Below are positions 1-41,436 of a stretch of DNA of 64,000 nt, piece by piece. The position numbers and the translations under genes are program-made. How positions within the stretch are numbered: the first letter of the stretch is position 1; each line of letters opens with the position of its first letter. The stretch is from Phallusia mammillata. Its lineage: Eukaryota. The DNA lies in NCBI GenBank assembly GCA_965637545.1, contig OZ281496.1, forward strand, positions 24,986,001 to 25,050,000. The letters run 5' to 3'. The notes under the pieces were generated by a model. That model was not told where the DNA came from and did not search any database. It worked only from the letters and a program-made list of their open reading frames with translations.

Positions 1-3000
1 CGCTTTGGGTTCTGAAACAAAACACAAACTTGAAATCTAATTTCCAATGTTTGCAATATTAATCATAATCAAAAGCATTACACTATTTGCCATGCAATGC
101 AAACAACAATCTTCGAAATTTAACATCACAAACTCATTACCTGGAAAAACTTCATAGTGCAATGGAAATGATTGGTTCCACCCTGATGGCAAATCAGTTC
201 GTATCACTTGCACAGTGAAATTGGAGTCACAAACTTTGGTGACTTTCAAAGTAAAGGTATGTTTGGGTAAACCAGGTGCAGTCACCATCACTTCAACACT
301 CTTGTTCAAAGTTTTCTTGAGAGGAAAGGTAAATGATGCAGTTGGAGTAGAACTGCTCGGAATGGTCATTGAACCAGTCTGCAAAGCTGAAAAACAACAG
401 AGAAGTAAAGAGTCGATCATATTTTTCACACAAATCTAGTGGCAAAGGGACTTACTTTGGGGCACACTTGGTGTAGTGGTAGTGATATTTTTGTTGGCAA
501 GAGATTTGGGTTCTGAAACAAAACACAAATTTGAAATTTGATTTTTAATGTTTCCAATATTAACTGTGCATGAGAGCGGTACTCTATCTGGGAACACGAC
601 ACACAGCAAAATATTTCAATTTTAAGAACTCAATCTCATTACCTGGATGGATTTCATAGTGCAATGGAAATGAATTGTTCCACCCTGATGGCAAATCAGT
701 TCGTTTCACTTCCACAGTGAAATTGGAGTCACAAATTTTAGTGACTTTCAAAGTAAAGGTATGCTTGGGTAGACCAGGCGCAGTAACCATCACTTCAACA
801 CTCTTGTTCAAAGTTTTATTGAAAGGAAAGGTAAATGAGGCAGTTGGAGTAGAACTGCTCGGAATGGTCATTGAACCATTCTGCAAAGCTGAAAAACACA
901 AAGAAATGAAGAGTCAGTCAGATTTTTCGCATCAATCTACTGGACAAAGGGCCTTACTTTGGGGCACACTTGGTGTGGTGGTGGTAGTGATATTTTTGTT
1001 GACAAGGGCTTTGGGTTCTGAAACAAAAGACAAACTTCATGTTTGATGTTTCATGTTTGCAATAATAACTGTGCATAAAGAGCGTTACTCTTTTAGGAAC
1101 ACAACACAAGGAAAAATATTTAAATTTTAAGAACACGATCTCATTACCTGGATAGACTTCATAGTGCAATGGAAATGATTGGTTCCACCCTGATGGCAAA
1201 TCAGTTCGTTTCACTTGCACAGTGAAATTGGAGTCACAAACTTTGGTGACTTTCAAATTAAAGGTATGCTTGGGTAGACCAGGTGCTGTCACCATCACTT
1301 TAACGCTCTTGTCCAAAGTTGTATTGAAAGGAAAGGTAAATGAGGCAGTTGGAGTAGAACTGCTCGGAATGGTCATTGAACCAGTCTGCAAAGCTGAAAA
1401 ACAAAAAACAGATAAAGAGTCAGTCAGATTTTTCGCACCAATCTACTGGACAAAGGGTCTTACTTTGGGGCACACTTGGTGTGGTGGTAGTGATATTTTT
1501 GGTGGCAAGCGCTTTGGGTTCTGAAACAAAACATAAACTTGAAATGTAATTTCCATTGTTCGCAATATTAATCATAATCAAAAGCATTACACTATTTGGC
1601 ATGCAATGCAAACAACAATCTTTGAAATTCAACATCACAAACTCATTACCTGGAAAAACTTCATAGTGCAATGGAAATGATTGGTTCCACCCTGATGGCA
1701 AATCAGTTCGTTTCACTTGCACAGTGAAATTGGAGTCACAAACTTCTATGACTTTCAAATTAAAGGTATGCTTTGGTAGACCAGGTGCAGTCACCATCAC
1801 TTCAACGCTCTTGTCCAAAGTTGTATTGAAAGGAAAGGTAAATGAGGCAGTTGGAGTAGAACTGCTCGGAATGGTCATTGAACCAGTCTGCAAAGCTGAA
1901 AAACACAAAGAAATGAAGAGTCAGTCAGATTTTTCGCACCAATCTACTGGACAAAGGGCCTTACTTTGGGGCACACTTGGTGTGGTGGTGGTAGTGATAT
2001 TTTTGTTGACAAGGGCTTTGGGTTCTGAAACAAAAGACAAACTTCATGTTTGATGTTTCATGTTTGCAATAATAACTGTGCATAAAGAGCGTTACTCTTT
2101 TAGGAACACAACACAAGGAAAAATATTTAAATTTTAAGAACACGATCTCATTACCTGGATAGATTTCATAGTGCAATGGAAATGATTGGTTCCACCCTGA
2201 TGGCGAATCAGTTCGTTTCACTTGCACAGTGAAATTGGAGTCACAAACTTTTATGACTTTCAAATTAAAGGTATGCTTTGGTAGACCAGGTGCTGTCACC
2301 ATCACTTTAACGCTCTTGTCCAAAGTTGTATTAAAAGGAAAGGTAAATGAGGCAGTTGAAGTAGAACTGCTCGGAATGGTCATTGAACCAGTCTGCAAAG
2401 CTGAAAAACAACAAAGAAATGAAGAGTCAGTCAGATTTTTCGCACCAATCTACTGGACAAAGGGTCTTACTTTGGGGCACACTTGGTGTGGTGGTGGTGG
2501 TAGTGATATTTTTGGTGGCAACGGCTTTGGGTTCTGAAACAAAACACAAACTTCATGTTTGATGTTTCATGTTTGCAATAATAACTGTGCATAAAGAGTG
2601 TTACTCTTTTAGGAACACAACACAAGAAAAAATATTTAAATTTTAAGAACACAATCTCATTACCTGGAAAAACTTCATAGTGTAATGGAAATGATTGGTT
2701 CCACCCTGATGGCAAATCAGTTCGTTTCACTTGCACAGTAAAATTGGAGTCACAAATTTTAGAAACTTTTAATGTAAAGGTATGCCTGGGTAATCCAGGT
2801 GCTGTCACCATCACTTCAACACTCTTGTTCAAAATTGTCTTGAGCGGAAAGGTAAATGAGGCAGTTGGAGTAGAACTGCTCGGAATGGTCATTGAACCAC
2901 TCTGCAAAGCTGAAAAACAACAAAGAAATGAAGAGTCAGTCAGATTTTTTACACAAATCAACTCGACAGGGGGCCTCACTTTGGGGCACACTTGGTGTGG

Positions 3001-6000
3001 TGGTGGTGGTGATATTTTTGTTAGCAAGCGCTTTGGGTTCTGAAACAAAACACAAACTTGAAATCTAATTTCCAATGTTTGCAATATTAATCATAATCAA
3101 AAGCATTACACTATTTGCCATGCAATGCAAACAACAATCTTCGAAATTTAACATCACAAACTCATTACCTGGAAAAACTTCATAGTGCAATGGAAATGAT
3201 TGGTTCCACCCTGATGGCAAATCAGTTCGTATCACTTGCACAGTGAAATTGGAGTCACAAACTTTGGTGACTTTCAAATTAAAGGTATGCTTGGGTAGAC
3301 CAGGAGCAGTCACCATCACTTCAACACTCTTGTTCAAAGTTTTATTGAAGGGAAAGGTAAATGAGGCAGTTGGAGTGGAACTGCTTGGAATGGTCATTGA
3401 ACCATTCTGCAAAGCTGAAAAACAACAGAGAAAGTAAAAATTCAAATATTTTTTCACAAAAAGGCAGTCGATTAAAAGCCTTACTTTGGGGCAAGCTTGG
3501 TGTAGTGGTAATGATATTTTTGTTGGCAAGTGCTTTGGGTTCTGAAACAAAACACAAACTTGAAATGTAATTTCCAATGTTTACAACATTAACTGTGCAT
3601 AAAGAGTGGTGCTCTAATTGGAACACGACACAAGGAAAAATACTTCAATTTCAAGACCACGAATTCATTACCTGGATAAATTTTGTATTGCAATGGAAAT
3701 GATTGGTTCCACCCTGATGGCAAATCAGTCCGTTTCACTTGTACAGTAAAATTGGAGTCACAAATTTTGGTGACTTTCAAAGTAAAGGTATGCTTGGGTA
3801 ATCCAGGTGCAGTCACCATCACTTCAACACTCTTGTTCAAAATTGTCTTGAGCGGAAAGGTAAATGATGCAGTTGGAGCAGAACTGCTCGGAATGGTCAT
3901 TGAACCACTCTGCAAAGCTGAAAAACAACAAAGAAATGAAGAGTCAGCTATTTTTTGCACCAATCTACTGGATAAAGGCCTTACTTTGGGATACACTTGG
4001 TGCAGTGGTAGCAACATTTTTGTTGGCAAGGGCTTTGGGTTCTGAAACAAAACACAAACTTGATAATTGATTTTGAATGTTTACAATATAAATTGTGCAT
4101 AAACAACGTAACACTATTTGGCAAGCAACACAAGAAACAATCATCGAATTTCAACATCACAAACTCATTACCTGGAAAAACTTCATAGTGCAATGGAAAT
4201 GATTGGTTCCACCCTGATGGCAAATCAGTTCGTATCACTTGCACAGTGAAATTGGAGTCACAAACTTTGGTGACTTTCAAATTAAAGGTATGCTTGGGTA
4301 GACCAGGTGCTGTCACCATCACTTTAACGCTCTTGTCCAAAGTTGTATTGAAAGGAAAGGTAAATGAGGCAGTTGGAGTAGAACTTCTCGGAATGGTCAT
4401 TGAACCAGTCTGCAAAGCTGAAAAAATAAAAAAAAATAAAGAGTCAGTCAGATTTTTCGCACCAATCTACTGGACAAAGGGTCTTACTTTGGGGCACACT
4501 TGGTGTGGTGGTAGTGATATTTTTGGTGGCAAGCGCTTTGGGTTCTGAAACAAAACATAAACTTGAAATGTAATTTCCATTGTTCGCAATATTAATCATA
4601 ATCAAAAGCATTACACTATTTGGCATGCAATGCAAACAACAATCTTTGAAATTCAACATCACAAACTCATTACCTGGAAAAACTTCATAGTGCAATGGAA
4701 ATGATTGGTTCCACCCTGATGGCAAATCAGTTCGTATCACTTGCACAGTGAAATTGGAGTCACAAACTTTGGTGACTTTCAAATTAAAGGTATGCTTGGG
4801 TAGACCAGGTGCTGTCACCATCACTTTAACGCTCTTGTCCAAAGTTGTATTGAAAGGAAAGGTAAATGAGGCAGTTGGAGTAGAACTGCTCGGAATGGTC
4901 ATTGAACCAGTCTGCAAAGCTGAAAAACACAAAGAAATGAAGAGTCAGTCAGATTTTTCGCACCAATCTACTGGACAAAGGGCCTTACTTTGGGGCACAC
5001 TTGGTGTGGTGGTGGTAGTGATATTTTTGTTGACAAGGGCTTTGGGTTCTGAAACAAAAGACAAACTTCATGTTTGATGTTTCATGTTTGCAATAATAAC
5101 TGTGCATAAAGAGCGTTACTCTTTTAGGAACACAACACAAGGAAAAATATTTAAATTTTAAGAACACGATCTCATTACCTGGATAGATTTCATAGTGCAA
5201 TGGAAATGATTGGTTCCACCCTGATGGCAAATCAGTTCGTTTCACTTGCACAGTGAAATTGGAGTCACAAACTTTTATGACTTTCAAATTAAAGGTATGC
5301 TTTGGTAGACCAGGTGCTGTCACCATCACTTTAACGCTCTTGTCCAAAGTTGTATTAAAAGGAAAGGTAAATGAGGCAGTTGGAGTAGAACTGCTCGGAA
5401 TGGTCATTGAACCAGTCTGCAAAGCTGAAAAAAATAAAATAAAGAGTCAGTCAGATTTTTCGCACCAATCTACTGGACAAAGGGTCTTACTTTGGGGCAC
5501 ACTTGGTGTGGTGGTGGTAGTGATATTTTTGTTGGCAAGCGCTTTGGGTTCTGAAACAAAACATAAACTTGAAATGTAATTTCCAATGTTTGCAATATTA
5601 ATCATAATCAAAAGCATTACACTATTTGCCATGCAATGCAAACAACAATCTTCGAAATTCAACATCACAAACTCATTACCTGGATAGATTTCATAGTGCA
5701 ATGGAAATGATTGGTTCCACCCTGATGGCAAATCAGTTCGTTTCACTTGCACAGTGAAATTGGAGTCACAAACTTTTATGACTTTCAAATTAAAGGTATG
5801 CTTTGGTAGACCAAGTGCAGTCACCATCACTTCAACGCTCTTGTCCAAAGTTGTATTGAAAGGAAAGGTAAATGAGGCAGTTGGAGTAGAACTGCTTGGA
5901 ATGGTCATTGAACCAGTCTGCAAAGCTGAAAAACAACAAAGAAATGAAGAGTCAGTCAGATTTTTTTACACAAATCAACTCGACAAGGGGCCTCACTACG

Positions 6001-7950
6001 GGGCACACTTGGTGTGGCGGTGGTGATATTTTTGTTGGCAAGCGCTTTGGGTTCTGAAACAAAACACAAACTTGATAATTGATTTTCAATGTTCACAATA
6101 TAAATTGTGCATAAACAACGTAACACTATTTGGCAAGCAACACAAGAAACAATCATCGAATTTCAACATCAATAATCTGTTACCTGGAAAAACTTCATAG
6201 TGCAATGGAAATGATTGGTTCCACCCTGATGGCAAATCAGTTCGTATCACTTGTACAGTGAAATTGGAGTCACAAACTTTGGTGACTTTCAAATCAAAGG
6301 TACGCTTCGGTAGACCAGGAGCAGTCACCATCACTTCAACACTCTTGTTCAAAGTTGTATTGAAAGGAAAGGTAAATGAGGCAGTTGGAGTGGAACTGCT
6401 TGGAATGGTCATTGAACCATTCTGCAAAGCTGAAAAAAAACAAAGAAAGTAAAAATTCAAATATTTTTTCACAGAAAGGCAGTCGATTAAAAGCCTTACT
6501 TTGGGGCAAGCTTGGTGTAGTGGTAATGATATTTTTGTTGGCAAGCGCTTTGGGTTCTGAAACAAAACACAAACTTGAAATCTAATTTCCAATGTTTACA
6601 ACATTAACTGTGCATAAAGAGGTGCTCTATTTAGAAAATGACACAAGGAAAAATACTTCAATTTCAAGACAACGAATTCATTACCTGGATAAATTTTGTA
6701 ATGCAATGGAAATGATTGGTTCCACCCTGATGGCAAATCAGTCCGTTTCACTTGTACAGTAAAATTGGAGTCACAAATTTTGGTGACTTTCAAAGTAAAG
6801 GTATGCTTGGGTAATCCAGGTGCAGTCACCATCACTTCAACACTCTTGTTCAAAATTGTCTTGAGCGGAAAGGTAAATGATGCAGTTGGAGCAGAACTGC
6901 TCGGAATGGTCATTGAACCACTCTGCAAATCTGAAAAACAACAAAGAAATGAAGAGTCAATTATTTTTTGCAACAATCTACTGGATAAAGGCCTTACTTT
7001 GGGGTACACTTGGTGTAGTGGTAGCGACCTTTTTGTTGGCAAGGGCTTTGGGTTCTGAAACAAAACACAAACTTGATAATTGATTTTCAATGTTCACAAT
7101 AAAAATTGTGCATAAACACAGTAACACTATTTGGCAAGCAACACAAGAAACAATCATCGAATTTCAACATCACTAATCTATTACCTGGAAAAACTTCATA
7201 GTGCAATGGAAATGATTGGTTCCATCCTGATGGCAAATCAGTTCGTTTTACTTCCACAGTGAAATTGGAGTCACAAATTTGGGTGACTTTCAAATTAAAG
7301 GTATGCTTGGGTAATCCAGGTGCAGTCACCATCACTTCAACACTCTTGTTCAAAGTTTTCTTGAAAGGAAAGGTAAATGAGGCAGTTGGAGTAGAACTGC
7401 TCGGAATGGTCATTGAACCACTCTGCAAAGCTGAAAAACAATAAAGAAATGAAGAGTCAGTCAGATTTTTTACACAAATCAACTCGACAGGGGGCCTCAC
7501 TTTGGGGCACACTTGGTGCGGTGGTGGTGATATTTTTGTTAGCAAGCGCTTTGGGTTCTGAAACAAAACACAAACTTGAAATCTAATTTCCAATGTTTGC
7601 AATATTAATCATAATCAAAAGCATTACACTATTTGCCATGCAATGCAAACAACAATCTTCGAAATTCAACATCACAAACTCATTACCTGGAAAAACTTCA
7701 TAGTGCAATGGAAATGATTGGTTCCACCCTGATGGCAAATCAGTTCGTATCACTTGCACAGTAAAATTGGAGTCACAAACTTTGGTGACTTTCAAATTAA
7801 AGGTATGCTTGGGTAGACCAGGAGCAGTCACCATCACTTCAACACTCTTGTTCAAAGTTTTATTGAAAGGAAAGGTAAATAAGGCAGTTGGGGTAGAACT
7901 GCTCGGAATGGTCATTGAACCATTCTGCAAAGCTGAAAACAATATAGAAG
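1..7950 (-). repeat. 16 copies of a ~500-bp monomer (246-nt A-type domain exon plus 57-63-nt linker exon)
   Basis: Domain exons recur about every 500 bp from 141-386 up to ~7690-7930, with linker EPKALANKNITTT(T)PSVPQ. A partial linker exon at 1-11 shows that the array continues past the window edge. Confidence 0.95.
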
Positions 7951-10900
7951 TTTAGTCAAACAGATTTTTCTTGCAAATATACTGGATTTATAGCCTTACT
8001 TTGGGGTATACTTGGTGTAGTGGCTGTGATATTTTTGTTTGCAAGGGCTTTGGGTTCTGAAACAAAATACAAACTTGAAATTTGAATGAATCCACAAAGT
8101 GGATTCAATAGTTTGGAAAACTGACCTGAATACATTTTCCAATACAAAGTTGGCCGTGGCTTTTGGGCAACTGATGTATTTGAACCTGAAATTGTCACAT
8201 CAAATCCCCAGTCACATATTTTTACAACATTAACACTGTAGGTTGATTCTACACTCAACCAAACTCGAACTTGAATGCTCGAGTTCACACATGACTGGAA
8301 TGGAACTTTCAGGATCAATGGCACAGAAGATATTGGAGGAATTCTCATCTTTCCTTCTTGAAGAACTAAAACATTTTCGTAATTTAGTACAGATATTGTC
8401 AAAGCAAGTTCAAAAATAAATCATACAACCATGTTAGCAATAAAACGCAAGTATTAAACTCTCTTACTTTGAGGAGCATTTGATTGTGGTTTGATGGCTG
8501 TTTTGTTTGCAAGTTCTGGTTGCACTGCAATATAAAAACAAACCAGCTTGTCAAATAAAGTTGTAAACAAAAACTTTTGCACCTTTGACAGTTAAAACAC
8601 CTTTTGAAAAAGCAACATAGAAATGAAATAAAAAACTAAAATGATATATACCTGAGAAAACTTTGAATTGCAAAGGGAATGATTGATTCCATCCCAATGG
8701 CAGATCAATTCGTTTCACTTCCACAGTGAAATTGGAGTCACAAACTTTAGTGATTTTCAAAGCAATCCTATGATTTGGGAGACCAACTGCTGTTACCCAC
8801 ACTTCAACATTCTTGCTCAAAGTGCTATTAAATGGATATGTAAGTGAGGCAGTTGGACTAGAACTGATAGGAACAACTACATCACCCTTTTGTAACACTG
8901 AAGAAAACAAACAACAGCATTATTTATATATATTACACTTATTTCATTTCTGTCAGAATTTTACCTTGTGGTATGCCTGCAGTTGGAACTAAAAAAGATA
9001 TATGTTTCATTACTTAAGTATGATTGAAGTGTAATTGCAAGAACCAGTTGAAACAAAGACATTAGCTTACTTGCATCACTCCATCTTATTGCTTTCCAGT
9101 AAATCAGGCCATTTTCCTGCCAACCAACTGCTTTGTCCATTCTTGTGATGGACACATTAAAACCAAGATCAGAAGTAGAAGTAACCTTGACCACAAATGT
9201 TCCATTTTGAGCTAGGAATGTCACTTCAACTTTGGCTGTCTGTTTGATGCATGAGTTGAAAGGAACAAACTCATTCAACACCTGGGTACTGCTTGCTCCT
9301 ACTCCATGGATTCCACTTTGTATAACTACAAATAGAGACGAGATAAGCAAACCACACAATCAAACACCAATTTAACAACGCATGACTACTTGTCCAAACG
9401 CACCTTTTGATAGTGAAGCATTTTTTGTCAAAGCTACAGGTCCTGTAAGACAAAAGATGGAAATAAGCTGCTCTTTGACCCCAAAACTACATTGTTGAGT
9501 GAAGTTTCTACACTTTTCACTGTTACCTGAAAAAACTTCATAGAGCAATGGAAATGATTGGCTCCATCCTGATGGCAAATCAGTTCGTTTCACTTGCACA
9601 GTGAAATTGGAGTCACAAATTTGGATGAGTTTTAGAGTAAAGGTATGTTTGGGTAAACCAGGTGCAGTCACCATCACTTTAACACTCTTGTTCAAAGTTT
9701 TCTTGAAAGGAAAGGTAAATGAGGCAGTTGGAGTGGAACTGTTCGAAATGATCATTGAACCAGTCTGCAATGCTGAAAAAGAATAGAGAAGTAAAGAGTC
9801 GATCAAATTCTTTACACATATCTACTGAATAAAAGGCCTTACTTTGGGGCAGACTGGGTGTTGTGGCAGTGATATTTTTGTTAGCAAGTGCTTTGGGTTC
9901 TGAAACAAAACATAAACTTGAAATTTGATTTTGAGTGTTTGCCATGTTAATTGTGAATAAACTTTAATAAACAAGATTACACTATTTGACACACACAACA
10001 ATTTTTCAATTTCAAGAACATCAATACATTACCTGAGAAAACTTCATAGTGCAATGAGAATGATTGGTTCCACCCTGATGGCGCATCAATTCGTTTCACT
10101 TGCACAGTAAAATTGGAGTCACAAATTTTAGTGACTTTCAACGTAAAGGTATGTTTGGGTAGGCCAGGTGCAGTCACCATCACTTTAACACTCTTGTTCA
10201 AAGTTTTCTTGAAAGTAAAGGTAAATGAGGCAGTTGGAGTGGAACTGTTCGAAATGATCATTGAACCACTCTGCAATGCTGAAAAAGAATAGAGAAGTAA
10301 AGAGTCGATCAAATTCTTTACACATATCTACTGAATCAAAGGCCTTACTTTGGGGCAGACTGGGTGTTGTGGTAGTGATATTTTTGTTAGCAAGTGCTTT
10401 GGGTTCTGAAACAAAACATAAACTTGAAATTTGATTTTGAGTGTTTGCTACGTTAATTGTGAATAAACTTTAATAAAGAAAATGACACTATTTGACACAC
10501 ACAACATTTTTTCAATTTCAAGAACATTAATACATTACCTGAGAAAACTTCATAGTGCAATGAGAATGATTGGTTCCACCCTGATGGCACATCAATTCGT
10601 TTCACTTGCACAGTAAAATTGGAGTCACAAATTTTAGTGACTTTCAACGTAAAGGCATGTTTGGGTAGACCAGGTGCAGTCACCATCACTTCAACACTCT
10701 TGTTCAAAGTTTTATTGAAAGGAAAGGTAAATAAGGCAGTTGGGGTAGAACTGCTCGGAATGGTCATTGAACCATTCTGCAAAGCTGAAAACAATATAGA
10801 AGTTTAGTCAAACAGATTTTTCTTACAAATATACTGGATTTATAGCCTTACTTTGGGGTATACTTGGTGTAGTGGCTGTGATATTTTTGTTTGCAAGGGC

Positions 10901-28900: not shown

Positions 28901-31900
28901 TTGGAGTCACAAATTTGGATGAGTTTTAGAGTAAAGGTATGCTTGGGTAAACCAGGTGCAGTCACCTTCACTTCAACACTCTTGTTCAAAGTTTTCTTGA
29001 AAGGAAAAGTAAATGAGGCAGTTGGAGTAGAACTGTTCGAAATGATCATTGAACCAGTCTGCAATGCTGAAAAAGAATAGAGAAGTAAAGAGTCGATCAA
29101 ATTCTTTACACATATCTACTGAATTAAAGGCCTTACTTTGGGGCAGACTTGGTTTTGTGGCAGTGATATTTTTGTTAGCAAGTGCTTTGGGTTCTGAAAC
29201 AAAACATAAACTTGAAATTTGATTTTGAGTGTTTGCCATGTTAATTGTGAATAAACTTTAATAAACAAGATTACACTATTTGACACACACAACAATTTTT
29301 CAATTTCAAGAACATCAATACATTACCCGAGAAAACTTCATAGTGCAATGAGAATGATTGGTTCCACCCTGATGGCAAATCAGTTCGTTTCACTTGCACA
29401 GTGAAATTGGAGTCACAAATTTTAGTGACTTTCAAAGTAAAGGCATGTTTGGGTAGACCAGGTGCAGTCACCATCACTTCAACACTCTTGTTCAAAGTTT
29501 TATTGAAAGGAAAGGTAAATGAGGCAGTTGGAGTAGAACTGCTCGGAATGGTCATGGAACCATTCTGCAAAGCTGAAAAGCAATAGAGAAGTGAGGAGTC
29601 AATCAGATTTTTCACACAAAACCACTGGAGTTATAGCCTTACTTTGGGGCACACTTGGTGTAGTGGTAGGGATAGTTTTGTTTGCAAGGGCTTTGGGTTC
29701 TGAAACAAAACACAAACTTGAAATTTGAATAAATTTGCAAAGTGGATTCAATAGTTTGGAAAATTGACCTGAATACATTTTCCAATATAAAGTTGCACTT
29801 TGGTTCTGGGAAACTGGTGCATTTGAACCTGAAATTGTCACATCGAATCCCCAGTCACAAATTTTTACAACATTAACACTGTAGGTTGATGCTCCACTCA
29901 ACCAGACTCGAACTTGAATGCTCGAGTTCACGCATGACTGGAATGGAACTTTCAGGATCAATGGCACAGAAGATATTGGAGGAATTATCATCTTTCCTTC
30001 TTGAAGAACTAAAAACATTTTCGTAATTTAGTACAGATATTGTCCAAGCAAGTTCAAAAATAAATCATACAACCATTTTGGCAATAAAACACAAGTATTA
30101 AACACTCTTACTTTGAGGAGCATTTGATTGTGGTTTGATGGCTGTTTTGTTTGCAAGTTCTGGCTGCACTGCAATATAAAAAACAAACCAGCTTGACACA
30201 TACAATTAAAAATATAAAGTTTGTCGCTTTGACAGTTAAAACACCTTTTAACAAAGCAACATAAAAATGAAATCAAAATAAATATGAAAAATACCTGATA
30301 AAACCTTATACTGCAATGGGAATGATTGATTCCATCCCAATGGCAGATCAATTCGTTTCACTTCCACAGTGAAATTGGAGTCACAAACATTAGTGATTTT
30401 CAAAGCAATCCTGTGATTTGGGAGACCAACTGCTGTTACCCACACTTCAACATTCTTGCTCAAAGTGTTATTAAATGGATATGTGAGTGAGGCAGTTGGA
30501 CTAGAACTGATAGGAACAACTACATCACCCTTTTGTAACACTGAAGAAAACAAACACCAGCATTATTTATATATATTACACCTATTTCATTTCTGTCAGA
30601 ATTTTACCTTGTGGTAGGCCTGCAGTTGGACCTAAAAAAGATATATATTTCATTACTCAAGTATGTTTGAAGTGTAATTGCAAGAACCAGTTGAACCAAA
30701 TACATTAGCTTACTTGCATCACTCCATCTAAATGCTTTCCAGTAAATCAGGCCATTTTCCTGCCAACCAACTGCTTTGTCCATTCTTGTGATGGACACAT
30801 TAAAACCAAGATCAGAAGTAGATGTAACCTTGACCACAAATGTTCCATTTTGAGCTAGGAATGTCACTTCAACTTTGGCTGTCTGTTTGATGCACGAGTT
30901 GAAAGGAACAAACACATTCAACACCTGGGTACTGCTTGCACCTACTCCATGGGTTCCACTTTGTATAACTGAAATTTTGAAAGATGTTCATAACTTTTGC
31001 AATCACGCATTAATTAAACAACAATATCACTGCTTGTCCAATTACAGATGACAGTAAAAATCAACTCACCCTTTGATACAGAAGCATTTTTTGTCAAAGC
31101 AACAGATTCTGTAAAAACAAGAAATTAAAATTAAATTGTTTTAGATCACAAAAATATAGCCTTGAGTAAAGATTTTCGTGTTTCTCACTATTACCTGAGA
31201 AAACTTTATACTGCAATGGAAATGATTGGTTCCAACCTGATGGCATATCAGTCCGTTTTACTTGTACTGTAAAATGTGAGTCACAAACTTTGGTAATTTT
31301 CAAACTAAAGGTATGTTTTGGAAGACGAACAGATGACACCACCACTTCGACATTCTTGTTTAAAGTTGTATTAAATGGAAAGGTGAAAAAGGCAGTTGGA
31401 GTAGAACTGCTTGGAATAACTACATCACCAGTTTGCAATGCTAAAACATAAAAATAAGAGTGACAACTGTATAACTGCATGTTTGTTTCACAATGTTTAT
31501 GGTTATGAAAAAAGTTATCCCCAGTAATCATCTAAACTTACGATCTGTAATACTTTGGAATGCAAAAGAACCTCCCCAACTGGCAAAAGATTTGCTTGTT
31601 ACATTGTTTTGGGTGCTCCCAGTGTATGTAGACTGCCCCTGGTATTTGAAAACAGTGACAATGCCACCAGAATCTAAATAAATAATATTTTTTTGTTAAT
31701 ACCTGCATTAATTCACTTGCCAGAGCTTTTAGATTATTTTAGGCAAACTAAACTAGTTTCAGTCAAGTGAAGTTAGAAAACACAATAACTTTTATGGCAG
31801 TGATGTTTGTGTTTTTACAGGACAATATCATTTTTGATTCACTCAGTTGTGAATGTTTAGTATTTAATATGATATACCTGTTATACGTCCATTATGAATT

Positions 31901-34900
31901 GCTGCAGCACAAATATAAGAATCATCAGTGTACATTCCTGTTCCCCATAACCGTGAAGATGTTGCCTGACAACCGGCTGGACAAGCAAGTGCTACAGAAG
32001 TTCGTCCAGTGAAGTTAAGCTGCCTGGATTGTTTATTGCATGAATCTAAGTAGAAATAAGACAAAGATTTCTTGCATCTGTTCAAATTAAGTAATGTTGC
32101 TTTCCGTATATAATTAAAACAACATAGCATGCACTAAGCTGTGATGTTTGCACATGAACTAGATTTGAAACAAAATGTAAACAAAAATGCTTACATGTAG
32201 GTATGGCTGGCTTTACCAATTCAGGAGGATCTAAAAGCAAATCAATGAAATTGCTAAGTGCAAGATATTTTATCACCTTTTGACACCTTTTGAAAAAGCA
32301 AAATTAAAAATTAAATGAAAATTAAAGTGAAAAATACCTGATAAAACCTTATACTGCAATGGGAATGATTGATTCCATCCCAATGGCAGATCAATTCGTT
32401 TCACTTCCACAGTGAAATTGGAGTCACAAACATTAGTGATTTTCAAAGTAAATGTATGCATTGGGAGACCAACTGCTGTTACCCACACTTCAACATTCTT
32501 GCTCAAAGTTGTGTTGAATGGAAAGGTGAAAAGGGCAGTTGGAGCAGAACTGCTTGAAACAACTACATCACCAGTTTGCAATGCTAAAACATAAAAATAA
32601 GAGTGACAACTGCGTAACTGCATGTTTGTTTTACAACTTTTATGGTTATAAAAAAAGTTGTCCCCAGTAATCATCTAAACTAGGGGTGTGCAACCCGCAG
32701 CCCGCGGGCCACAATCCGGCCCACCAAGCTGTTTAGTGTGACCCTCACTCTGATTCAGAGCAAGTAAAAATGCACATTTTAGCAAAAAATCCCTGCTTTA
32801 GTTTTCGGTAAATCTATAAAGTTGCTATACGTAATAAGAATAAGCTAAACCAGCACATGGAAATTACAATTTTATTTAGCCAGACCTATGGTCTTCTATT
32901 CGTACTACAAGGTGCTTGTTGTGTAACTTCGAACGATCAAATGTGACATAATAACCCTCTTTGCCTTGTAAACAATTACTTTGTTGTGAAAGCCAGTGTT
33001 GCCACAAAACTTACTTGCACCTAACATTTTAAAGTTGATTTGGCAAGCTTGGTGTTGACTTTTGAATTTTTTCTTACGTTGTATATTTACTACAGCAGAC
33101 TAAAGGTAAAGTGACTATTCATTTAATAATTAAAGTTATAACAATAAATATATAACATATGTTGTGACTTATTTTAAATGGTACTTACATGGGCGAAAAT
33201 ATCTGAAATTTATTCTTAGACCCAGCAGTTGACAATACAACACAACCAGCTTACCATAAGTAGTAATAACTTGTGTAACAATCAGTTGTAGTCACACAAA
33301 TAGCTCTACCCAGTAAAGTGTTTATTGGCATGTAAAGCCAACACGAAAGAGTATTTTAAATGCAAAATTATCTGCATATCTGCATGATACTATAATGCAA
33401 GCCGCACCAGCAGTAGGGTAAAAAGGCATAAACAAATACAGTACATGAAACAAATTGTGTGGCCCTCGCTTGATGTCCGAAATTGGTTATATGGCCCACC
33501 GACGAAAAAGGTTGCACACCCCTGATCTAAACTTACGATCTGTAATACTTTGGAATGCAAAAGAACCTCCCCAACCGGCATAGGATTTGCTTGTTACATT
33601 GTTTTTGGTGCTCCCTGTGTATGTAGACTGTCCCTTGTATTTGAAAACAGTGACAATGCCACCAGAATCTGAACAAATAACAAAGTCTTTGGTAATACCT
33701 GCAGTAATCGCTTGCCAGAGCTTTTAGACTATTATAGACAAACTTAACCAGTTTCAGTCAAGTGAAGTTAGAAGCTTTTATGTCAGAAACGTTTTTTTTT
33801 TGTGCAGGCTTTCACTCATAGCGTCTTATGTAAATGTTCAGTATTTAATATGATATACCTGTTATACGTCCATCATGAATTGCTGCAGCACAAATATAAG
33901 AATCATCAGTGTACATTCCTGTTCCCCATAACCGTGAAGATGTTGCCTGACAACCGGCTGGACAAACAAGTGTTACAGAAGCTCGTCCAGTAAAGTTAAG
34001 CTGTCTGGATTTATTATTGCATGAATCTAAATAGAAAAAAAACAAAGCTTTGATATATTAAACTAGAAGGGTGGCTTAGCACATAGTGCCGTTGCACATA
34101 CACTGTGACCTATTTCTTAACATATATTTACATCCGACATTTATTTTATATTGGATCCCATATCATCCACTGTATTTTATAACCTTAGTTGTTTCTGCAA
34201 GCAGAAACTCATGGGTCCCCACACATGCAAAGTTGTAAATAATGCATTTCAAGAGATAACAATGAGAAGGGTTGGCATTGTAACGTCAAACACAGTGATC
34301 GGTACTGTGCATAAATAAATATGTTACATGGAGTACAAACTATTTAAGTTCATTCCATTCATACATTTATTAAGGTTTTTCTATTTTATGACCATCTGAG
34401 AAAAAAGTGTTAAGTAGTGAGAAAATAGGCCAAAACAAAACAATCAGCTCCTATTAATGGTTAATTGCATTTGACTGTAGGGGCCTAGTGGAGTAAATGA
34501 TAGGTACTACTGAGTTTAACAGGACAACCAACACCTACAAATGGTACACTCTACAAACTGTCCAAATATAATTTAATTCATACATTGTTTAAAAAATTGA
34601 ACAATTTTGGGGGGCTAGTGGGGTGTTGGGGCAACAGGGTTAAACACAACATTCTACACCTATAAATGACAAATTCTGCAAGCTTTTCAAATTTCACTAA
34701 ATTCCGACACCGTTTAAAAAACTCACCCATTTTAGGGGGTCAGTGGGGGTAACCAATGGGGTTTTGATACCCAAAAGTATAAAATATGCAACCAGGATGA
34801 CCCAATTAACAGTCATGTAAAATTTCATCCAATAATGTTTAAAATTCTGACCACTAGAGGTGTTATTAGCAACATTCCTCAATGCTTCTGACGTCAAAAG

Positions 34901-37900
34901 GCTGTTAAGACCCCTCTGACTGGCATGTGCGAAAACGTCCAACAAGTAATGCACAAATACAAGTACCATATGTACTGGGGCCTTTATTACACCATTACAC
35001 CACAGAAATCTTTTGTTTGTGCCAACATACAAAAACGTTTTACACTTGGGGTCTAGCAGGGTAAATATTGGGGTTATCAAGTCAAACAAAGCAAATAGCA
35101 CATCTGCATAACTATATCTACCATCTGTAAAAGTTTCAGCCGAATTCACTAAATATTTCATGCCAGAAGTGCATGGACAAACTTCATCGGAGAAAAAAAA
35201 GGGGACCCATAATTCCTCCACTTATTTCATATTGGGTCCCATATTAGTCACCGTCTTTTATAACCGTAGTTGTTTCTGCAGGCAGAAACGCATGGGTCCC
35301 CACACATTTGCAAATAATGCAATTAAAGAGATAACCATAAGAAAATTTGGTGTTGTATAGCAAAACACTTAGATCAGTACTTGGCTTATATAATCATGCA
35401 ATACAAATTGGATTCAAATCAGACATTGTTTAAAGCAGGGGTGTGCAACCTGCGGCCCGCGGGCCAAATGCGGCCCTTGATTAAAGGTTGTGCGGCCCGC
35501 AGTGACGCTTGGATTTCAAATGCACTGGCAAACGAGTTTAACTACTATATATTTTTGAGCAGATTGATGCGCCCGGTGCTATTTTTTGTGACCTGACAAA
35601 ATGTGACTAGAATCAAATGCGAATTTACTTGTAGTTAAGCATATTTGGTAGTCAACAAAGGGAAATCACCTTGTGTTATACACAGGTGCGGCCCGCGATC
35701 AAATTTTGACAACTATATTTGGCCCCACAGTAACAAAGGTTGCACACCCCTGGTTTAAAGTTTTCCTATTTAAAACAATTAATGTTCTATTTTAAAACAA
35801 AGAAGTAAAACACAAAAATCGACACCTATAAATGGCACGTTTTACAAGCTAACCAAAATTCTTACAACTGCAGCCCTGTTTAAAAAACTCCCATCACCCA
35901 TTTTAGGGCGTTAGTGGGGTAAATATTGGGGCTACAGGGTTTAACACAACAATCAGCTTCTCGAAATGGCATTGGCTACAAGCTATCCAAATTTCACCGA
36001 TTCAGACACTGTTTGAAAAAAATCAACCACTTTAGGGGGCTAGTGGGGTAAATATTGGGGCTACAGGGTTTAACAGAAACAATTGACACCTATATATGCC
36101 ATATTCTACAAACTATCCTAATTTCAGCCAATTCCGATACCGTTTAAAAACTCACCCATTTTAGGGGGCTAGTGGGGTAAATGTTGGAGCTGCAAGATCA
36201 AACACAACAATCATCATTTGTAAATGGTAAACTCTACAAGCTATCCAAATGTCAGTCAATTCTGGCCCTGTTTAAATAAATAACCCATTTTAGGGGGCTA
36301 GTGGGGTAATTAATGGGGTTCTGCACCCTAATGTTAAAAATAAGAAACCGCAATGACCCAATCAAAAATTCTGTAAAATTTCGTCCAAATCAGCCAATGT
36401 TTAAAACTGTGACCACCAGGAGGAGTTTTAATCAACAACCATAATGACCTTGTGACGTCATAAGGCTATGAACAACCCCCTAACTGCAATCTGCAAACAC
36501 ATTCATAGCCCAGCCCAGAAACACAAGTAACATATGAGGTTGGCTTTATAACACCACATAAAACTAACGTTTGTGGTCCGCTGCAACAACATGTAACGTT
36601 TTGGGGGCTAGCGTGGTAAATGCTGGGGTTATCGGGGCAAATGAAGCAGATGGCACATCTACATAACTATATCTACCATCTGTAAAAGTTTCATCCAAAT
36701 CCATCAAACATTTGATGACAAAAGAGGGTGGACAAACCGCAGGGAAGAAAAAAAAAGAAATCGAGTAAAATCAAAATGTGTCCACTTCAGGGAAGGGGAC
36801 CCATAATTACAAAGAAACACTCCTCTTGGTATATAGCTGAAAAACTATGGCATGCACCAAAGCAGTGTTGTTTGGACATGCACTGCATTAAGACATTGTA
36901 AACAAAAAAGCTTACATGTAGGTATGGCTAGCTTGGCCAATTCAGGAGGATCTGAAACAAATTAATCAAATTGTAAATTGCAAGAAATTTTATCAAATTA
37001 ACATATTGATCACAAATAATGGACAACAGAATTATATATTTTCTAAACATGTAACTTGATTACCTGCAAAAATTCTCCAGTATAGTGTCGTCGGAGGGCT
37101 CAGCCCCACAGAAGCATTTTGACCTAAGATTCTCACAACAAATCCCCAGTCACAAATTTTGACAACATGGGGTGTACAAGCCGTTGGTCCGACACACCAA
37201 ACTTTAAGTCCAGTGCTGGAGTTTACACAGGATTGAAAAGCAACTTTTAATTGATTTCCATAAGTAAAGCCGGGTGGGACTAGCATCCATCCCAGCTGTA
37301 AAGCTGCAAAACATTTTTGGTTTATTATTTATTTATTTTTTGAGACGCAAAATTTTTGTTAAAACAAATATATATATGCAACATGTTAAAAGCAAGAAGT
37401 CGAACCAGAACTAAAATGAACTGACAAACCCATGAACCCATTTGTGTGTTTTATTTCATTAAACCTGAACTGAACCATAATTTACAATTAATCCTAAACC
37501 ATACTTGAACCGCAAATTTTGTTTGGTGCTGAACCGAAACAGAACCAGCAAGAAAAACCTACTGAAGAATACATGAATTATTATCAGCTATGGGGCAGGT
37601 AAAAATAACAAATAAAAGGTTGTGCACTGTGCACAGTCAAAATTGATACAGAATTTGATAGGCTGTGTAGATAAAGGTAGAATTAAATCAAGAGGATTTT
37701 AACCACTTCCAAACTCGAAAATATATGTCCTTTTAAACCTTAACCGAACCTGAAGTTTGACTCCGTGGTTGAAAGGTTAGGAAAATGTAAATTCAAGTCA
37801 AGTGTGTACAATTTATATCAGTTCATAGATTCTGGAATTATTTTATTATCTAATGGACTTTCATTTTACATGTGTTTTGATTGATAGTGTATAGCACATA

Positions 37901-40900
37901 CAACTGTCCTTACATGGTAATATCCGACTTGAGGTGGTAGTGAGATCAGTCGGTACTGCAACAACAATTAAAATACTTTATTTACTGTTGTTTAGTTATT
38001 TTCAACAACCATTAACTATGGAAACTGCACTTGTACAAAAACTAGCACTAACACAGGCACAAAGTAAACTTATGTTGTTTAAACCAATTTCAGGAGTCAG
38101 AAAAAGAATATATCAGGTACTGCACAAAATGTCTTTTTTGTAAATCTCGATTATGGCAAATGAAACTCTCAAAGTGATAAAAGTATTCTATAGTAAAACA
38201 TCAAGCTTGAAACCACCTGAAGTAATCACAGTTTGAGAAGATCTGCTTATTAGACCAAGTCAGCATTCAACAAGTTTAAAGTAACAGCACACTTAATTTA
38301 TTTTCATAATTCAAACATAATTTAGCACACAAAAATTGTTGTCTATAAAGTCCAGAACTTTTTTGGGTGAGATTGTCAGGCACCTGACCAGTGAAGTTAA
38401 ACCACTTGAAACTATATGAACAAACCATTTATACAAAGCTAAAGTTTGGGAATTTACCACAATACAACCAAAAACTTAACGTTTCTTACCAGTTGAGTTG
38501 ATGTTTTGTAGAGCCAATGGTTCTGGAGATACATGATTTTCGTTAGCAACTGACTAACACAGTACATGGCAGAGTGTAGCTAATTGTATTGTGCAATAAA
38601 ATAGAGATGTGCTAGTCATAAGGTGGCTAACACAGACTGTAATCTACAGCTTAGTGTGTTTAATGCCAGATGTAAATTTTATCACTGACATACAAACCTG
38701 GCAGAGTTTTCCATTGTAAATCAAGAGACTGGTTCCAACCAATTGCCAAATCATTCCGCTTAATAGCAATTGTAAAACCAGAATCACAAATTTTAAGAAT
38801 CCGTGTGGAATACTGGTAATCTGCAGTTCCAGCCAAATAGGTGTGAACAACGTTGCTTGAATTTAAAGACTTATTGAATGGGACTGTAATGGTAGTTGTT
38901 GGGTATAAGCTTGCTGGGACAACACTTAATCCATCTTGTAATGCTATAACAAAACAGAAACATCATTTTCGCACATAGATACTTTGACTTCCCACAAATA
39001 TGATGTTTGGTTGCTGTGTTATATTAATCAATTTATGGTATTTTCGAAGGCAAAGCAGGAAAGGTCCACATTTGTTTTTTGTTTAATAATTAAACTGTTC
39101 TCACATAATTATTGAAATTAGAACCAAAAGTGGTTACAATAAATCTCATTCCGCAATTACTTTGTGGCGCCATTCGCCACCCACATTTAAAAAATGCGGC
39201 CGATGTGCGTCAACTGTTGAAGCGGAACGAAAACAAACAAATCGAATATCTAAATCTGACTTCTTTGTTTTGGTCGTGTCCGATTACAGGAAGTTTTCTA
39301 GCAAACACGTATCCATGCTTAAGTCCGAACCAAGACTACATGCCGTTTTGATGCCCCCAAAGAAATTCTTGCTGTGGTTCTTTTCAAGTTGGATAAAGAG
39401 GTGGGTTCGTGAATGCGCTTTTTTACCAAAAAAATTATGGATACATATATTGTTGGTGAAACAAAATGGCCGACGTCCAATAACTTTTTAGTGCAATTAT
39501 TTGAGCAGTTTTATTGTGCGATTGATTTTTTGTCTTTCACTGCGACATGTAGTTATTAACAAATACTTTTATAGTGGACAAAAAGGCCCGCGTGCCCGCG
39601 TTTGTGAAAATATCGTGTGCACATTCTAAAGTAGCGTATTGGGGCCAATCTAGGCAGCCCTTTGTCCAGTAAGTTTTTTTATGTGTGTTGAAAGTATACA
39701 GGGCTATTTCGAAATACTAATAAAACTTCCTAATTAACCATATCAATATGCTGACGGCACGGTAACGGCCATAGGCGCCGAGTTTTACAAAAATGCAAGG
39801 TGGCGGACGTAAAATATGACGTCATTTCATGTGACGTCACTAATGCGCGCAAGAGCTCAAACTCAAAGCTCAACAAACTTCCAATAGAATGCAAAGTTCG
39901 TCAAAATCATAACAAAAGAGAATTTTTGAAATAATATTTGCGTAGAACACTTTGTTGTAACGTTTTTCATTCGTTTGGCAATGTTCAAAAGATGTTTGGC
40001 CAAGTTGTTGTTGCTTTGTATCACCCAAAATGACCATTTAATACAGTACAATCGCAAAACATTCCATTCACTAGCAAACAATTGTGTGTTTTACGTCATA
40101 AACAACAACTTTTGACGCTTTTATTTGTTGTTATATCGCCAGCACACTTGTTTAAAAGCAAAACCGTTCCTGATTTTCTTCAGATTATACGATGTTTCGT
40201 ACGATACCGCTACCAATAACCCAAATTTTCCACAGTGGCCGCCACCGTGCTTTACAAACCCAAGGTGGCGGCGCCACCCCGCCACCACCTACTTGGCGCC
40301 TATGGTAACGGCTATTAGGTTTGGGATAAAAGTTTCTGCACACAATAACATTATAATTCAATTTCAAATACCCTATTACATGTAAGTTCCGACAAATCAC
40401 TTAGTCGTTCACCCTTTGGTTTTAAAGATATATATATTTCGCTATTACAGCATCGTCAGTATCTACGAACTGCTTGTTCGTAGATACTGACGATGCTGTA
40501 ATAGCGAAATATATATATCTTTAAAACCAAAGGGTGAACGACTAAGTGATTTGTCGGAACTTACATCTATTGTTATAAGGATTTTTAGTCTTCACTCACC
40601 AAGCAACGGACTGGGTGATTCGAGCTTTAAGTTTCAATTACGAGTATTGACCCTATTACATGGTTCCAATAGTAGATTGCGTATTTTATTGAGCCCGTAT
40701 TGCATCGCCTTAGCGCTATTTGGCGCGTGTCATGATGAAAATATATTTATTCTGTGGTTCGTATTATATAATGTAACTTTAGCTAAGAAAATTCAGTGTA
40801 AAAAACCACTAAATCTGTCGCTATATTTTATTTGTTTTATCGAAACACTGATGATGCTTTTATAGCGAAATGCATTTGTTTTGATAAAACAAATAAAATA

Positions 40901-41436
40901 TAGCGACAGATTTAGTGGTTTTTCACACTGAATTTTCTTGATCTGATTTTAATGACCCTGAATCGTCGCAGTCGTTTTACTTGAAAGGAGATTTCAATAA
41001 TAAGAAAAGAATTACTACGTAACTTTAGCTACTGTTTTATTTTGTATAATATGCCTTTAGGGAACTGTTTGCATGGAATGTTACCAAATACAATAATATC
41101 TCTTGGTAAGACGATTTCATACATACATAACGAAAGCGTAACCACTTCCCGTCCCGTTTAAACTCTAAGGGAAGGTGGTCGTCTATCAATCTGCCAATCT
41201 ACAGGATGGATCTGTTTACTGTTTATGCTCGATATTTTATTATTTGATGTTTCGGAGTCTACGTAAACAATACATCTAAGACCATTATAACTGCTGCAAA
41301 GTGAACAAACAACCCCAAAACCAACACAGCGATAAAATACAGCGTTTCATTTTGTAAAATACAAGTTATTTTTACCTGCTGTAATACTTTGTGCTAAAAA
41401 AGCCAAAGCAACCACTATAGGAGCTAGGTTTCTCAT
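1..41436 (-). CDS. Giant multi-exon secreted protein: signal peptide, ~69 tandem H-type-lectin-like domains with Thr/Pro linkers, 2 LCCL domains; 3' end lies outside the window
   Basis: Domain exons of 240-255 nt (e.g. 141-386, 29769-30008, 30714-30968, 38698-38943) alternate with 24-63 nt linker exons (e.g. 456-512, 30608-30631). All checked exons are bounded by AG/GT, are multiples of 3 and are phase 1-1. The ORF track shows no stops inside the domain exons. The fold assignment rests on the pattern LQxG...F...V.V...F.V.V...F.V.V.RxD...GW...Y/W and is inference. Confidence 0.85.
7960..31110 (-). repeat. About 10 copies of a ~2349-bp higher-order tandem repeat, each with 5 domain exons (D-C-B-A-A') and 5 linker exons
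   Basis: Equivalent ORFs recur at 2348-2350 bp steps (e.g. 14161, 16510, 18860, 21209, 23558, 25907, 28255, 30604), and introns are also near-identical between copies. D=VIQSGIHGVG..., C=VLQKGDVVVP..., B=LQEGKM.IPP..., A=ALQNGSMTIP..., A'=ALQTGSMIIS... Confidence 0.95.
31542..32045 (-). CDS. LCCL domain 2 (exons 31878-32045 and 31542-31673)
   Basis: Close paralogue of LCCL 1 with the same 168+132 nt exon split. It is part of a duplicated [linker-LCCL-domain] unit. Confidence 0.9.
32681..33524. mobile_element. Non-autonomous hAT (Charlie/Buster-like) element, 844 bp
   Basis: TIRs (t)aggggtgtgcaacc ... ggttgcacacccctg, with 8-bp TSD atctaaac at 32673-32680 and 33525-33532. The empty paralogous site is visible at ~31530. 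Confidence 0.9.
33537..34026 (-). CDS. LCCL domain 1 (exons 33859-34026 and 33537-33668)
   Basis: CPAGC...LWGTGMYTDDSYICAAAIHDGRI followed by DSGGIVTV...YTGSTKNNVTSKSY..WGGSF matches the LCCL signature (CPxxC, GTxxYxxxSxICxAAxHxG, GS.NGV.S). Confidence 0.9.
34150..36808 (-). mobile_element. Two tandem Helentron/HINE-like non-autonomous elements with internal ~125-bp repeats
   Basis: Each unit has a hairpin gtttctgc-NN-gcagaaac (34191-34208; 35272-35289), then atgggtcccc (34211; 35292) with its inverted copy ggggacccat at the far end (35201; 36795). Internal repeats contain ccattttagggggctagtggggtaa. The family assignment is by architecture only. Confidence 0.55.
35436..35752. mobile_element. 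hAT (Charlie/Buster-like) MITE, 317 bp, nested in a HINE-like element
   Basis: TIRs caggggtgtgcaacct / aggttgcacacccctg, with 8-bp TSD gtttaaag at 35428-35435 and 35753-35760. Confidence 0.92.
36916..38943 (-). CDS. Divergent 5' domain and linker exons: 38698-38943, 38490-38522, 37914-37955, 37064-37303, 36916-36951
   Basis: Manual translation gives ALQDGLSVVPASLYPTTTITVPFNKSL...KICDSGFTIAIKRNDLAIGWNQSLDLQWKTLP; EPLALQNINST; VPTDLTTTSSRILP; SLQLGWMLVPPGF...QSCVNSS...KICDWGF...TLYWRIFA; DPPELAKLAIPT. All have canonical splice sites and phase 1. Confidence 0.8.
40383..40649. mobile_element. Palindromic Penelope-derived mini-element
   Basis: Perfect 91-bp inverted arms (40380-40470 / 40476-40566) with a 5-nt loop, flanked by the 13-bp direct repeat accctattacatg (40370-40382; 40650-40662). 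The arms carry a hammerhead motif. Confidence 0.7.
40482..40520 (+). ncRNA. Minimal type-I hammerhead ribozyme motif (mirror copy on the minus strand at 40426-40464)
   Basis: AGATA-CTGACGA-T-GCT(GTAAT)AGC-GAAA-TATA-T-A-TATCT: intact core, stem I AGATA/TATCT, stem II GCT/AGC, 1-bp stem III with a palindromic tetraloop, and a UH cleavage site. Confidence 0.75.
40786..41018. mobile_element. Second hairpin Penelope-derived mini-element
   Basis: Imperfect ~63-bp inverted arms spanning 40785-40939, flanked by the 13-bp direct repeat gtaactttagcta (40773-40785; 41019-41031). Confidence 0.65.
40838..40886 (+). ncRNA. Minimal type-I hammerhead ribozyme motif at the hairpin apex
   Basis: TATCGAAACA-CTGATGA-T-GCT(TTTAT)AGC-GAAA-TGCA-T-T-TGTTTTGATA: intact core, 10-bp stem I with one G-U pair that extends into the long hairpin, and a palindromic TGCA loop. 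Confidence 0.75.
41376..41436 (-). CDS. Probable first coding exon of the giant gene (signal peptide MRNLAPIVVALAFLAQSITA)
   Basis: ATG at 41436, basic residue, hydrophobic core, small residues near the end. The 61-nt exon ends in a phase-1 GTAAAA donor that matches the downstream phase-1 exons. Not in the ORF track. Confidence 0.7.

Follow-up and report, generated by a model that had tools for sequence, protein, structure and literature searches.

A Phallusia mammillata locus with 83 H-lectin-like domain exons probably encodes a giant adhesion G-protein-coupled receptor

What kind of protein is made from a run of dozens of small, near-identical exons that all splice in one phase and follow a single signal-peptide exon? 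The question is raised by a 64,000-nucleotide stretch of the genome of the ascidian Phallusia mammillata (assembly GCA_965637545.1, contig OZ281496.1, positions 24,986,001 to 25,050,000 of the forward strand; hereafter the window), the minus strand of which carries a long array of exons encoding an H-lectin-like domain. It is proposed here that the array is the ectodomain of a single giant adhesion G-protein-coupled receptor (GPCR) gene, the product of which would have about 9,050 amino acids with 83 H-lectin-like and two LCCL domains, and we consider this reading probable. Window positions are used throughout; negative positions lie to the left of the window.

The gene model begins with exon 1 (41376..41436, minus strand), identified by reading the sequence; this 61-nt signal exon (41436-41376) encodes MRNLAPIVVALAFLAQSITA, that is, the ATG and a 20-residue signal peptide, and ends in a phase-1 GT donor; its ATG is preceded by an in-frame TGA at a distance of four codons and by a TATAAA at about 110 nt. 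Domain exons were collected by a mechanical scan, which accepted a stretch only if it was preceded by AG and followed by GT, measured a multiple of 3, was free of stop codons when read in phase 1 and gave a product beginning with [LIVM]-Q-x-G. On the minus strand exactly 69 domain exons passed, each 240-255 nt long and all within 38943-141, which is the number that a first-pass annotation of the sequence had estimated. Each is followed by a linker exon of 24-63 nt (68-70 of them in the window) with a good polypyrimidine tract and donor, and the linker products include EPKALANKNITTTTPSVPQ, EPVALTKNASLSK, VPTAGLPQ and VQPELANKTAIKPQSNAPQ. Domain, linker and LCCL exons are uniformly phase 1-1 with AG/GT borders, so that the earlier image of beads on a string holds at the level of the exons. 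Besides the signal exon the window model has 141 exons, 20,997 nt or 6,999 codons, and one or two additional linker exons lie between the first two domains, in good agreement with the annotated signal peptide and roughly 144 phase-1 exons encoding some 7,000 amino acids.

The annotation had also described the frame as open at the left edge, and the chain does continue there. In 30 kb of leftward sequence we found 14 more domain exons, ten of the type designated type 5, the homogeneous run of which crosses the window edge, and four divergent ones, bringing the total to 83, all open with AG/GT borders. The strongest match of an exhaustive protein search was P0001 (CAB3229160.1, "CD97 antigen-like [Phallusia mammillata]", 1,086 amino acids), which maps exon by exon, with 95-100% identity, to coordinates -5868..-18175. 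It consists of the four divergent domains with their linker segments, a stalk rich in Thr that includes a small Cys module faintly resembling GPR128_N (E=0.0035), a helical and then beta-rich region, a GPS, seven helices and an acidic tail. Single exons to the left of the window matched Pfam 7tm_2 (E=2.2e-5, 24.3 bits versus a cut-off of 20.6) and GPS (E=0.0066, 17.4 bits, under the 22.5-bit cut-off). The C-terminal half of P0001 hit adhesion GPCRs only when compared with PDB sequences by phmmer, with ADGRG2 the best (8.4e-12, from the GPS through the seventh helix), and the nearest Atlas clusters that have a name are all families of the seven-transmembrane (7TM) type, 7tm_2+GPS. A protein homologue search with P0001 returned only P0001 itself and no orthologue of the whole C-terminal part. 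Its GPS pattern, CKSY..W..C..CICKQVTDYSLVV, aligns with that of ADGRG2.

The P0001 sequence opens with an internal Met that lies five residues inside a domain exon, and it lacks a signal peptide of its own, indicating that the record is N-terminally incomplete. Between the last type-5 domain and the first domain of P0001 is a gap of 951 nt, in which a 48-nt phase-1 linker exon with a good score supplies the connection. Because the same phase-1 exon chain continues into stalk, GPS and 7TM domain, and because these are joined to the last four domains in P0001, the protein is most likely membrane-anchored; the secreted free polymer proposed in the first-pass annotation (a mucus net, tunic or egg coat) is thus not what the locus appears to encode. 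The statement that no named protein could be recognised remains roughly true of the whole architecture. It does not hold for the C-terminal 1,086 amino acids, which are the "CD97 antigen-like" record, nor for a two-domain fragment on record as an uncharacterised protein.

The best 7TM/GPS matches of the receptor part are ADGRG-type receptors (ADGRG2, ADGRG6, ADGRG7/GPR128) together with the unclassified adhesion GPCRs of ascidians, and it differs from the cleaving receptors at the GPS, where they have H-L-T and the Phallusia protein has Q-V-T. The full cleavage position reads Q-V-T-D-Y, which departs from the H-L-T/S consensus for autoproteolysis. Some bona fide adhesion GPCRs are uncleaved as well, so that the departure does not speak against membership of the class. 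The replacement of H-L-T by Q-V-T suggests that the receptor is probably uncleaved and would signal without shedding its ectodomain; the segment T-D-Y-S-L-V-V retains the hydrophobic pattern of a tethered agonist.

The modelled gene spans about 59.6 kb on the minus strand, from window position 41436 to 18,175 bases past the left edge (approximately C3:24967825), and has roughly 180-190 exons, all of which we infer to lie in one transcript. The protein length is a sum of exon lengths only: about 7,935 amino acids through the last type-5 domain, one linker, and about 1,092 amino acids to the stop, which makes about 9,050. From the N-terminus, the predicted product would consist of the signal peptide, two H-lectin-like domains, then LCCL, domain, LCCL and domain, followed by ten five-domain units, 26 near-identical type-5 domains and four divergent domains, and would end with the Thr-rich stalk and its small Cys-containing module, a GAIN-like region closing in the GPS motif, the seven-helix domain and a short acidic tail.

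The domains fall into two unique N-terminal ones, two type-2-like ones next to the LCCL domains, those of the five-domain units and those of the homogeneous type-5 run. The first, D0 (38698..38943), was found by the exon scan and is covered by X1 and X2 contigs from presumed RNA; it is followed by a 33-nt phase 1-1 linker exon (38490..38522) known from a spliced X2 contig. The exon scan also gave the second domain exon, D1 (37064..37303), which is followed in the exon model by the linker exon 36916-36951 (PPELAKLAIPT). LCCL domain 1 (33537..34026) is encoded by two phase-1 exons, 34026-33859 and 33668-33537, which match Pfam LCCL (PF03815) with E=3.3e-13 and 7.6e-6 (50.0 and 26.5 bits per exon half versus a cut-off of 22.6). 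A second copy of the domain-linker-LCCL module follows: domain exon 32583-32338 with linker 32230-32195 (PPELVKPAIPT; together 32195..32583), and LCCL domain 2 (31542..32045), the two phase-1 exons of which, 32045-31878 and 31673-31542, score E=2e-13 and 2.3e-6 (50.7 and 28.1 bits against the same cut-off). The LCCL domains reported by the first-pass annotation are therefore present, two in number, and each belongs to one copy of a module that has been duplicated and comprises a domain, a PPEL-K-AIPT linker and the LCCL. The periodic array (8000..31440), delimited by the exon scan and unit comparison, comprises domain exon 31440-31195 and then the ten five-domain units; the homogeneous array (1..7932), also from the exon scan, has 16 type-5 domain exons separated by 57-63-nt Thr/Pro linker exons, with 10 more copies beyond the window edge. 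All of these features are on the minus strand. A gel-forming mucin was considered and dropped, as the pieces scanned showed no Pfam family besides LCCL, GPS and 7tm_2.

The first-pass annotation had called the repeated domain H-type-lectin-like, with a likeness to phage gp53, and had suggested structure and profile comparisons of single domains with both families; these returned the H-lectin sandwich and matched both families. An AlphaFold2 (AF2) model built from an alignment of 13 domain types has six strands and a predicted local distance difference test (pLDDT) value of 92.4. When it was compared by VIA-align, in a search of all against representatives, rows 1-13 were all H-type lectins or related phage or pyocin fibre tips. 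The best was the C-terminal domain of the LKA1 gp49 tailspike (Z 10.6), and the others included Helix pomatia agglutinin (2ccv; Z 9.3 over 79 of 81 residues, root-mean-square deviation (rmsd) 2.1), the discoidin I C-terminal domain (2w94; Z 9.2), phi297 gp61 (9.2), the R1 pyocin fibre (8.6), SLL-2 (7.5) and AP22 gp53 (6.4). Foldseek against the PDB retrieved the same families with weak E-values (0.012 or higher), and the best ESM Atlas match had a TM-score of 0.83 over 81 residues (rmsd 1.6) and belongs to a cluster that is 93% Pfam H_lectin. In sequence space, an exhaustive hidden Markov model search with the 13-domain profile matched 104 proteins among 1.84 billion; a Pfam scan of 54 of these detected H_lectin in 35 and Gp53-like_C in 15. 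Aligning the domain profile with the matched H_lectin/Gp53-like_C segments by hhalign gave 99.3% probability (E=7.6e-21, 80 of 81 columns), for a comparison set that had been fetched with the query profile and is hence not fully independent. The domain-alignment profile gave only chance matches against PDB sequences. The conserved core reads Q-x-G ... F-P-x-x-F ... G-F-x-V-x-V-x-R-x-D-x3-G-W-x-Q-x-L-x-L-x-W. Going by modelled fold and remote homology, the repeated domain is a divergent H-type lectin domain. The earlier assignment is thus supported by AF2, VIA-align, the Atlas and hhalign; a direct match to the Pfam H_lectin model was not found.

The array itself carries evidence that its exons are translated. 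The ten units are about 2,349 bp long, each with domains in the order type 3, type 2, type 4, type 5a, type 5b and with linker exons of 24-57 nt, and types 2, 3 and 4 have 10 copies each in this periodic part. Between units, exons are 97.3-99.8% and introns 92.5-99.7% identical (means of 98.6% versus 96.6%), which corresponds to a mean divergence of 1.4% in exons versus 3.4% in introns, about 2.5-fold less in exons. The ratio of nonsynonymous to synonymous substitution rates (dN/dS) between copies is 0.24 for type 2 and 0.39 for type 5. These values indicate that the array is young and that its copies behave as translated sequence under purifying selection. It grew by recent tandem duplication of exon-intron units, and with every exon in phase 1-1 the frame would survive changes in copy number and the skipping of exons. 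Exon-by-exon translation of the first ~7,900 codons gives 315 N-x-S/T sequons, and the linkers, of 8-20 residues, are rich in Pro, Thr and Asn (17% Thr, 17% Pro), predicting a heavily glycosylated product. The regularity of the array is broken at 9772-10784, where three successive type-5 domains occur instead of two (an extra copy near 10278), and splice signals are weaker at the linkers near 12293-12255 and 11879-11814. Most domain types have a single Cys and type 4 has two, with 92 Cys in 78 domain exons.

Transcript-level evidence comes from short pieces. P0002, a public Phallusia mammillata record of 204 amino acids for an uncharacterised protein with two domains, reads as domain, E-PKALANKNITTTTPSVPQ-T, domain, with exactly the predicted split codons, and then enters the intron after exon 3917-3672; its best match is to the homogeneous type-5 part. 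Contigs of four small runs guessed to be RNA were also compared with window positions 36400-41500. One X2 contig (depth 2.5) joins 38698 to 38522, removing a 175-nt GT..AG minus-strand intron at exactly the predicted D0 donor and linker acceptor, and another contig spans D0 unspliced. Taken with the exon and intron identities and dN/dS, the P0002 junctions and the contig spliced at predicted borders indicate that the exon array is not a product of chance.

If the gene model is correct, the ectodomain would form a heavily glycosylated cell-surface tether of sub-micrometre length. The beads of lectin fold, possibly together with the LCCL tip, may bind a repeated ligand with high avidity, glycans being the obvious candidate by analogy with the family, and the 7TM domain would report binding, or a pull on the ectodomain, as in other adhesion GPCRs. 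A more ambitious version of this proposal is that the protein is the largest GPCR yet seen (~9,000 amino acids) and represents a new adhesion-GPCR class, in which 83 functional H-type lectin domains turn multivalent glycan contact with microbes, tunic, eggs or neighbouring cells into G-protein signalling, and in which copy number varies between individuals and tunes reach or avidity. In that complete form we regard it as doubtful.

Several results weigh against the receptor model or parts of it. For the region that should hold the GAIN fold, P0001:405-752 (stalk and GAIN region), a single-sequence AF2 prediction had a pLDDT of 36 and was unusable, and a Pfam scan of the long piece P0001:380-1086 listed neither 7tm_2 nor GAIN. 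For the repeated domain, Pfam H_lectin (PF09458) matched none of the 13 domain types at E-values up to 10, nor was it found in a Pfam scan of the domain open reading frames. In H-type lectins of solved structure, such as Helix pomatia agglutinin and discoidin, the sugar (GalNAc in these two) is bound at the interfaces between the protomers of a trimer, which makes lectin activity of a tandem chain uncertain. For the transcript, the four small presumed-RNA runs yielded no contig containing the signal exon, the junction of which with the array is that of the model only, and none bridging the type-5 array and the first domain of P0001; support is limited to the short pieces described above, from runs that are small and only guessed to be RNA. 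For the copy number, the count of units that are 97-99.8% identical derives from one assembly, none of the copies in which exceeds 93% identity to P0002, so that the array either varies among individuals or is mis-assembled somewhere.

These points bear on three alternatives. The one that survives best, and which we take as a serious possibility although it is not the one we favour, is that the domains bind no sugar and act as a rigid glycosylated spacer, comparable to the Calx-beta, Ig or FN3 repeats of giant surface proteins, leaving ligand binding to the LCCL-containing N-terminal tip. The protomer-interface mode of sugar binding makes such a structural role for most domains a serious rival to a lectin function, and it would fit with the silence of the Pfam H_lectin model and with the presence of about three sequons within each domain; a homotrimer prediction for one domain gave no support to trimer formation, its score of 0.00 being evidence neither way. 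Against a mere scaffold, R-x-D-x3-G-W-x-Q is the best-conserved stretch over the 13 domain types and their bacterial and ascidian relatives, which points to a functional site, and the copies are under purifying selection.

Somewhat less probable, and on the whole unlikely, is that the gene is real and the mature protein far shorter, as a result of exon skipping or of an array inflated or collapsed in the assembly, in which case 9,000 amino acids would be a ceiling. Any subset of the phase 1-1 exons splices in frame, units are up to 99.8% identical, and the divergence of P0002 from every copy and the thin RNA support also count in its favour. It is opposed by the openness and intact AG/GT borders of all 83 domain exons, and by the roughly 2.5-fold lower divergence of exons and the dN/dS of 0.24-0.39, which are as expected of translated copies.

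Least probable is that two genes lie head to tail, a secreted poly-lectin made of signal exon and array and a separate adhesion GPCR starting near the four divergent domains: P0001 does start within a domain exon at -5851, introns lengthen to ~0.9-1 kb exactly at the divergent domains, no read bridges the two parts and related small secreted two-domain H-type lectins exist in Clavelina, but P0001, with its mid-domain internal Met downstream of a phase-1 AG acceptor and its lack of a signal peptide, looks 5'-truncated, a well-scoring phase-1 linker exon spans the gap, no in-frame terminal exon was seen, and in both paralogues examined the domain sits immediately before the same stalk and 7TM, in an interval the size of one gene.

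The paralogues place the single-gene receptor model in a genomic context. Tandem 7TM paralogues lie on the same strand just downstream, and further 7TM copies occur between C3:24754505 and 24934981. The two examined, L004 (C3:24904001-24914000, minus strand) and L005 (C3:24888001-24898000, minus strand), each have one H-lectin-like exon followed by the same stalk, a GPS and 7TM. Both GPS sequences read C-x-C-x-V/K-L-A-S-F (V-L-A-S-F and K-L-A-S-F), with Val or Lys at the position of the catalytic His. The locus is thus a local cluster of lectin-headed adhesion GPCRs. Weaker copies of the H-lectin-like domain occur elsewhere in the genome, and the closest non-self relatives of the domain are proteins of Clavelina lepadiformis (E 1e-11 to 4e-17), some of them named H-type lectin domain-containing. 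The likeness is confined to the domain: the small Clavelina lectins, of 169-251 amino acids with two or three domains, have no 7TM, unlike the Phallusia receptor. Longer Clavelina relatives exist too; one of them, P0011 (1,217 amino acids), was considered as a relative of the receptor and rejected, having only the lectin domains in common with it and no adhesion-GPCR similarity. It appears that an H-type lectin domain was placed before a lineage-specific adhesion GPCR and was then amplified more than eighty-fold in one member.

Among known systems, ADGRV1/VLGR1 is a functional analogue. It has been described as the largest adhesion GPCR, with 6,306 amino acids and Calx-beta repeats (PMC9496679, PMC13101372), and resembles the predicted Phallusia receptor in having a huge ectodomain that consists of one small beta-sandwich repeated many times ahead of the GPS and 7TM; membranes are connected by the fibrous links that it forms. 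It differs in size, the predicted Phallusia product being the larger at about 9,050 versus 6,306 amino acids, and in composition, as ADGRV1 combines Calx-beta with LamG/PTX and EAR domains whereas the Phallusia gene has H-lectin-like and LCCL domains. The scanned pieces of domains, linkers and stalk gave no Calx-beta match, and VLGR1 is absent from Ciona according to Kamesh et al. (PMC2396169), which together indicate that the Phallusia gene is not an orthologue of ADGRV1. The same study counted 24 lineage-specific adhesion GPCRs in Ciona, and in 21 of the 30 Ciona receptors the GPS was the sole domain recognised (PMC2396169). Known H-type lectins act as trimers or hexamers; they are small and secreted with a single recognition domain, and their families are not expanded (PMC8878817). 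Helix pomatia agglutinin, discoidin I/II and SLL-2 share the six-stranded sandwich with the Phallusia domain, the difference being its 83 copies in one receptor chain. The fold is also common to the tips of phage tailspikes, tail fibres and R-pyocin fibres (LKA1 gp49, phi297 gp61, AP22 gp53/gp54), where the domains are C-terminal receptor-binding tips of trimeric fibres, unlike the tandem repeats of an animal receptor. Our literature search turned up no adhesion GPCR reported to bear H-lectin or LCCL domains; H-type lectins and GPCRs were mentioned together only in a Toxoplasma rhoptry-exocytosis study (paper and preprint).

The remaining features of the window are repeats and neighbouring genes. 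A 129-bp tandem repeat (35809-36318, 3.9 copies) occupies part of the 2.9-kb intron that precedes the first LCCL exon, and two stretches resembling open reading frames, 36770-36567 and 35221-34700, have the motif FTDGRYSY.DV in common and appear to be copies of a further repeat within introns. At 36571-36912 and 40162-41187 presumed-RNA contigs are piled at high depth with loose ends on both sides, and parts of intron 1 have many genomic copies of 75-99% identity; these piles are dispersed intronic repeats and not exons of the receptor gene, and such repeats account for most of the placed contigs. Upstream of the receptor gene, an 852-amino-acid open frame (43880-46438, minus strand) with reverse transcriptase, RNase H and integrase domains is the pol of a Ty3/gypsy-type long terminal repeat retroelement, about 2.4 kb from exon 1. 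At 49449-51709, also on the minus strand, two open frames match the MGAT4 conserved region (E=3e-18 and 1e-15), suggesting that the upstream same-strand neighbour is an MGAT4-like N-acetylglucosaminyltransferase gene.

For annotation, the finding means that the public "CD97 antigen-like" record would cover no more than the end of a much longer gene. The adhesion GPCRs of ascidians have been described as mostly bare (PMC2396169); in at least one lineage-specific group the N-terminus conceals a lectin fold, present in 83 copies in one member, and the array is a clear case of exon units that have multiplied recently while remaining under purifying selection. A full-length product, if there is one, would take the place of ADGRV1 as the largest receptor of its class, and would be the first case found of H-type lectin domains on a GPCR and of such domains in long tandem arrays. 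It would also provide a system for asking how very long repeat ectodomains serve mechanosensing by adhesion GPCRs, and whether H-lectin domains bind sugar outside a trimer.

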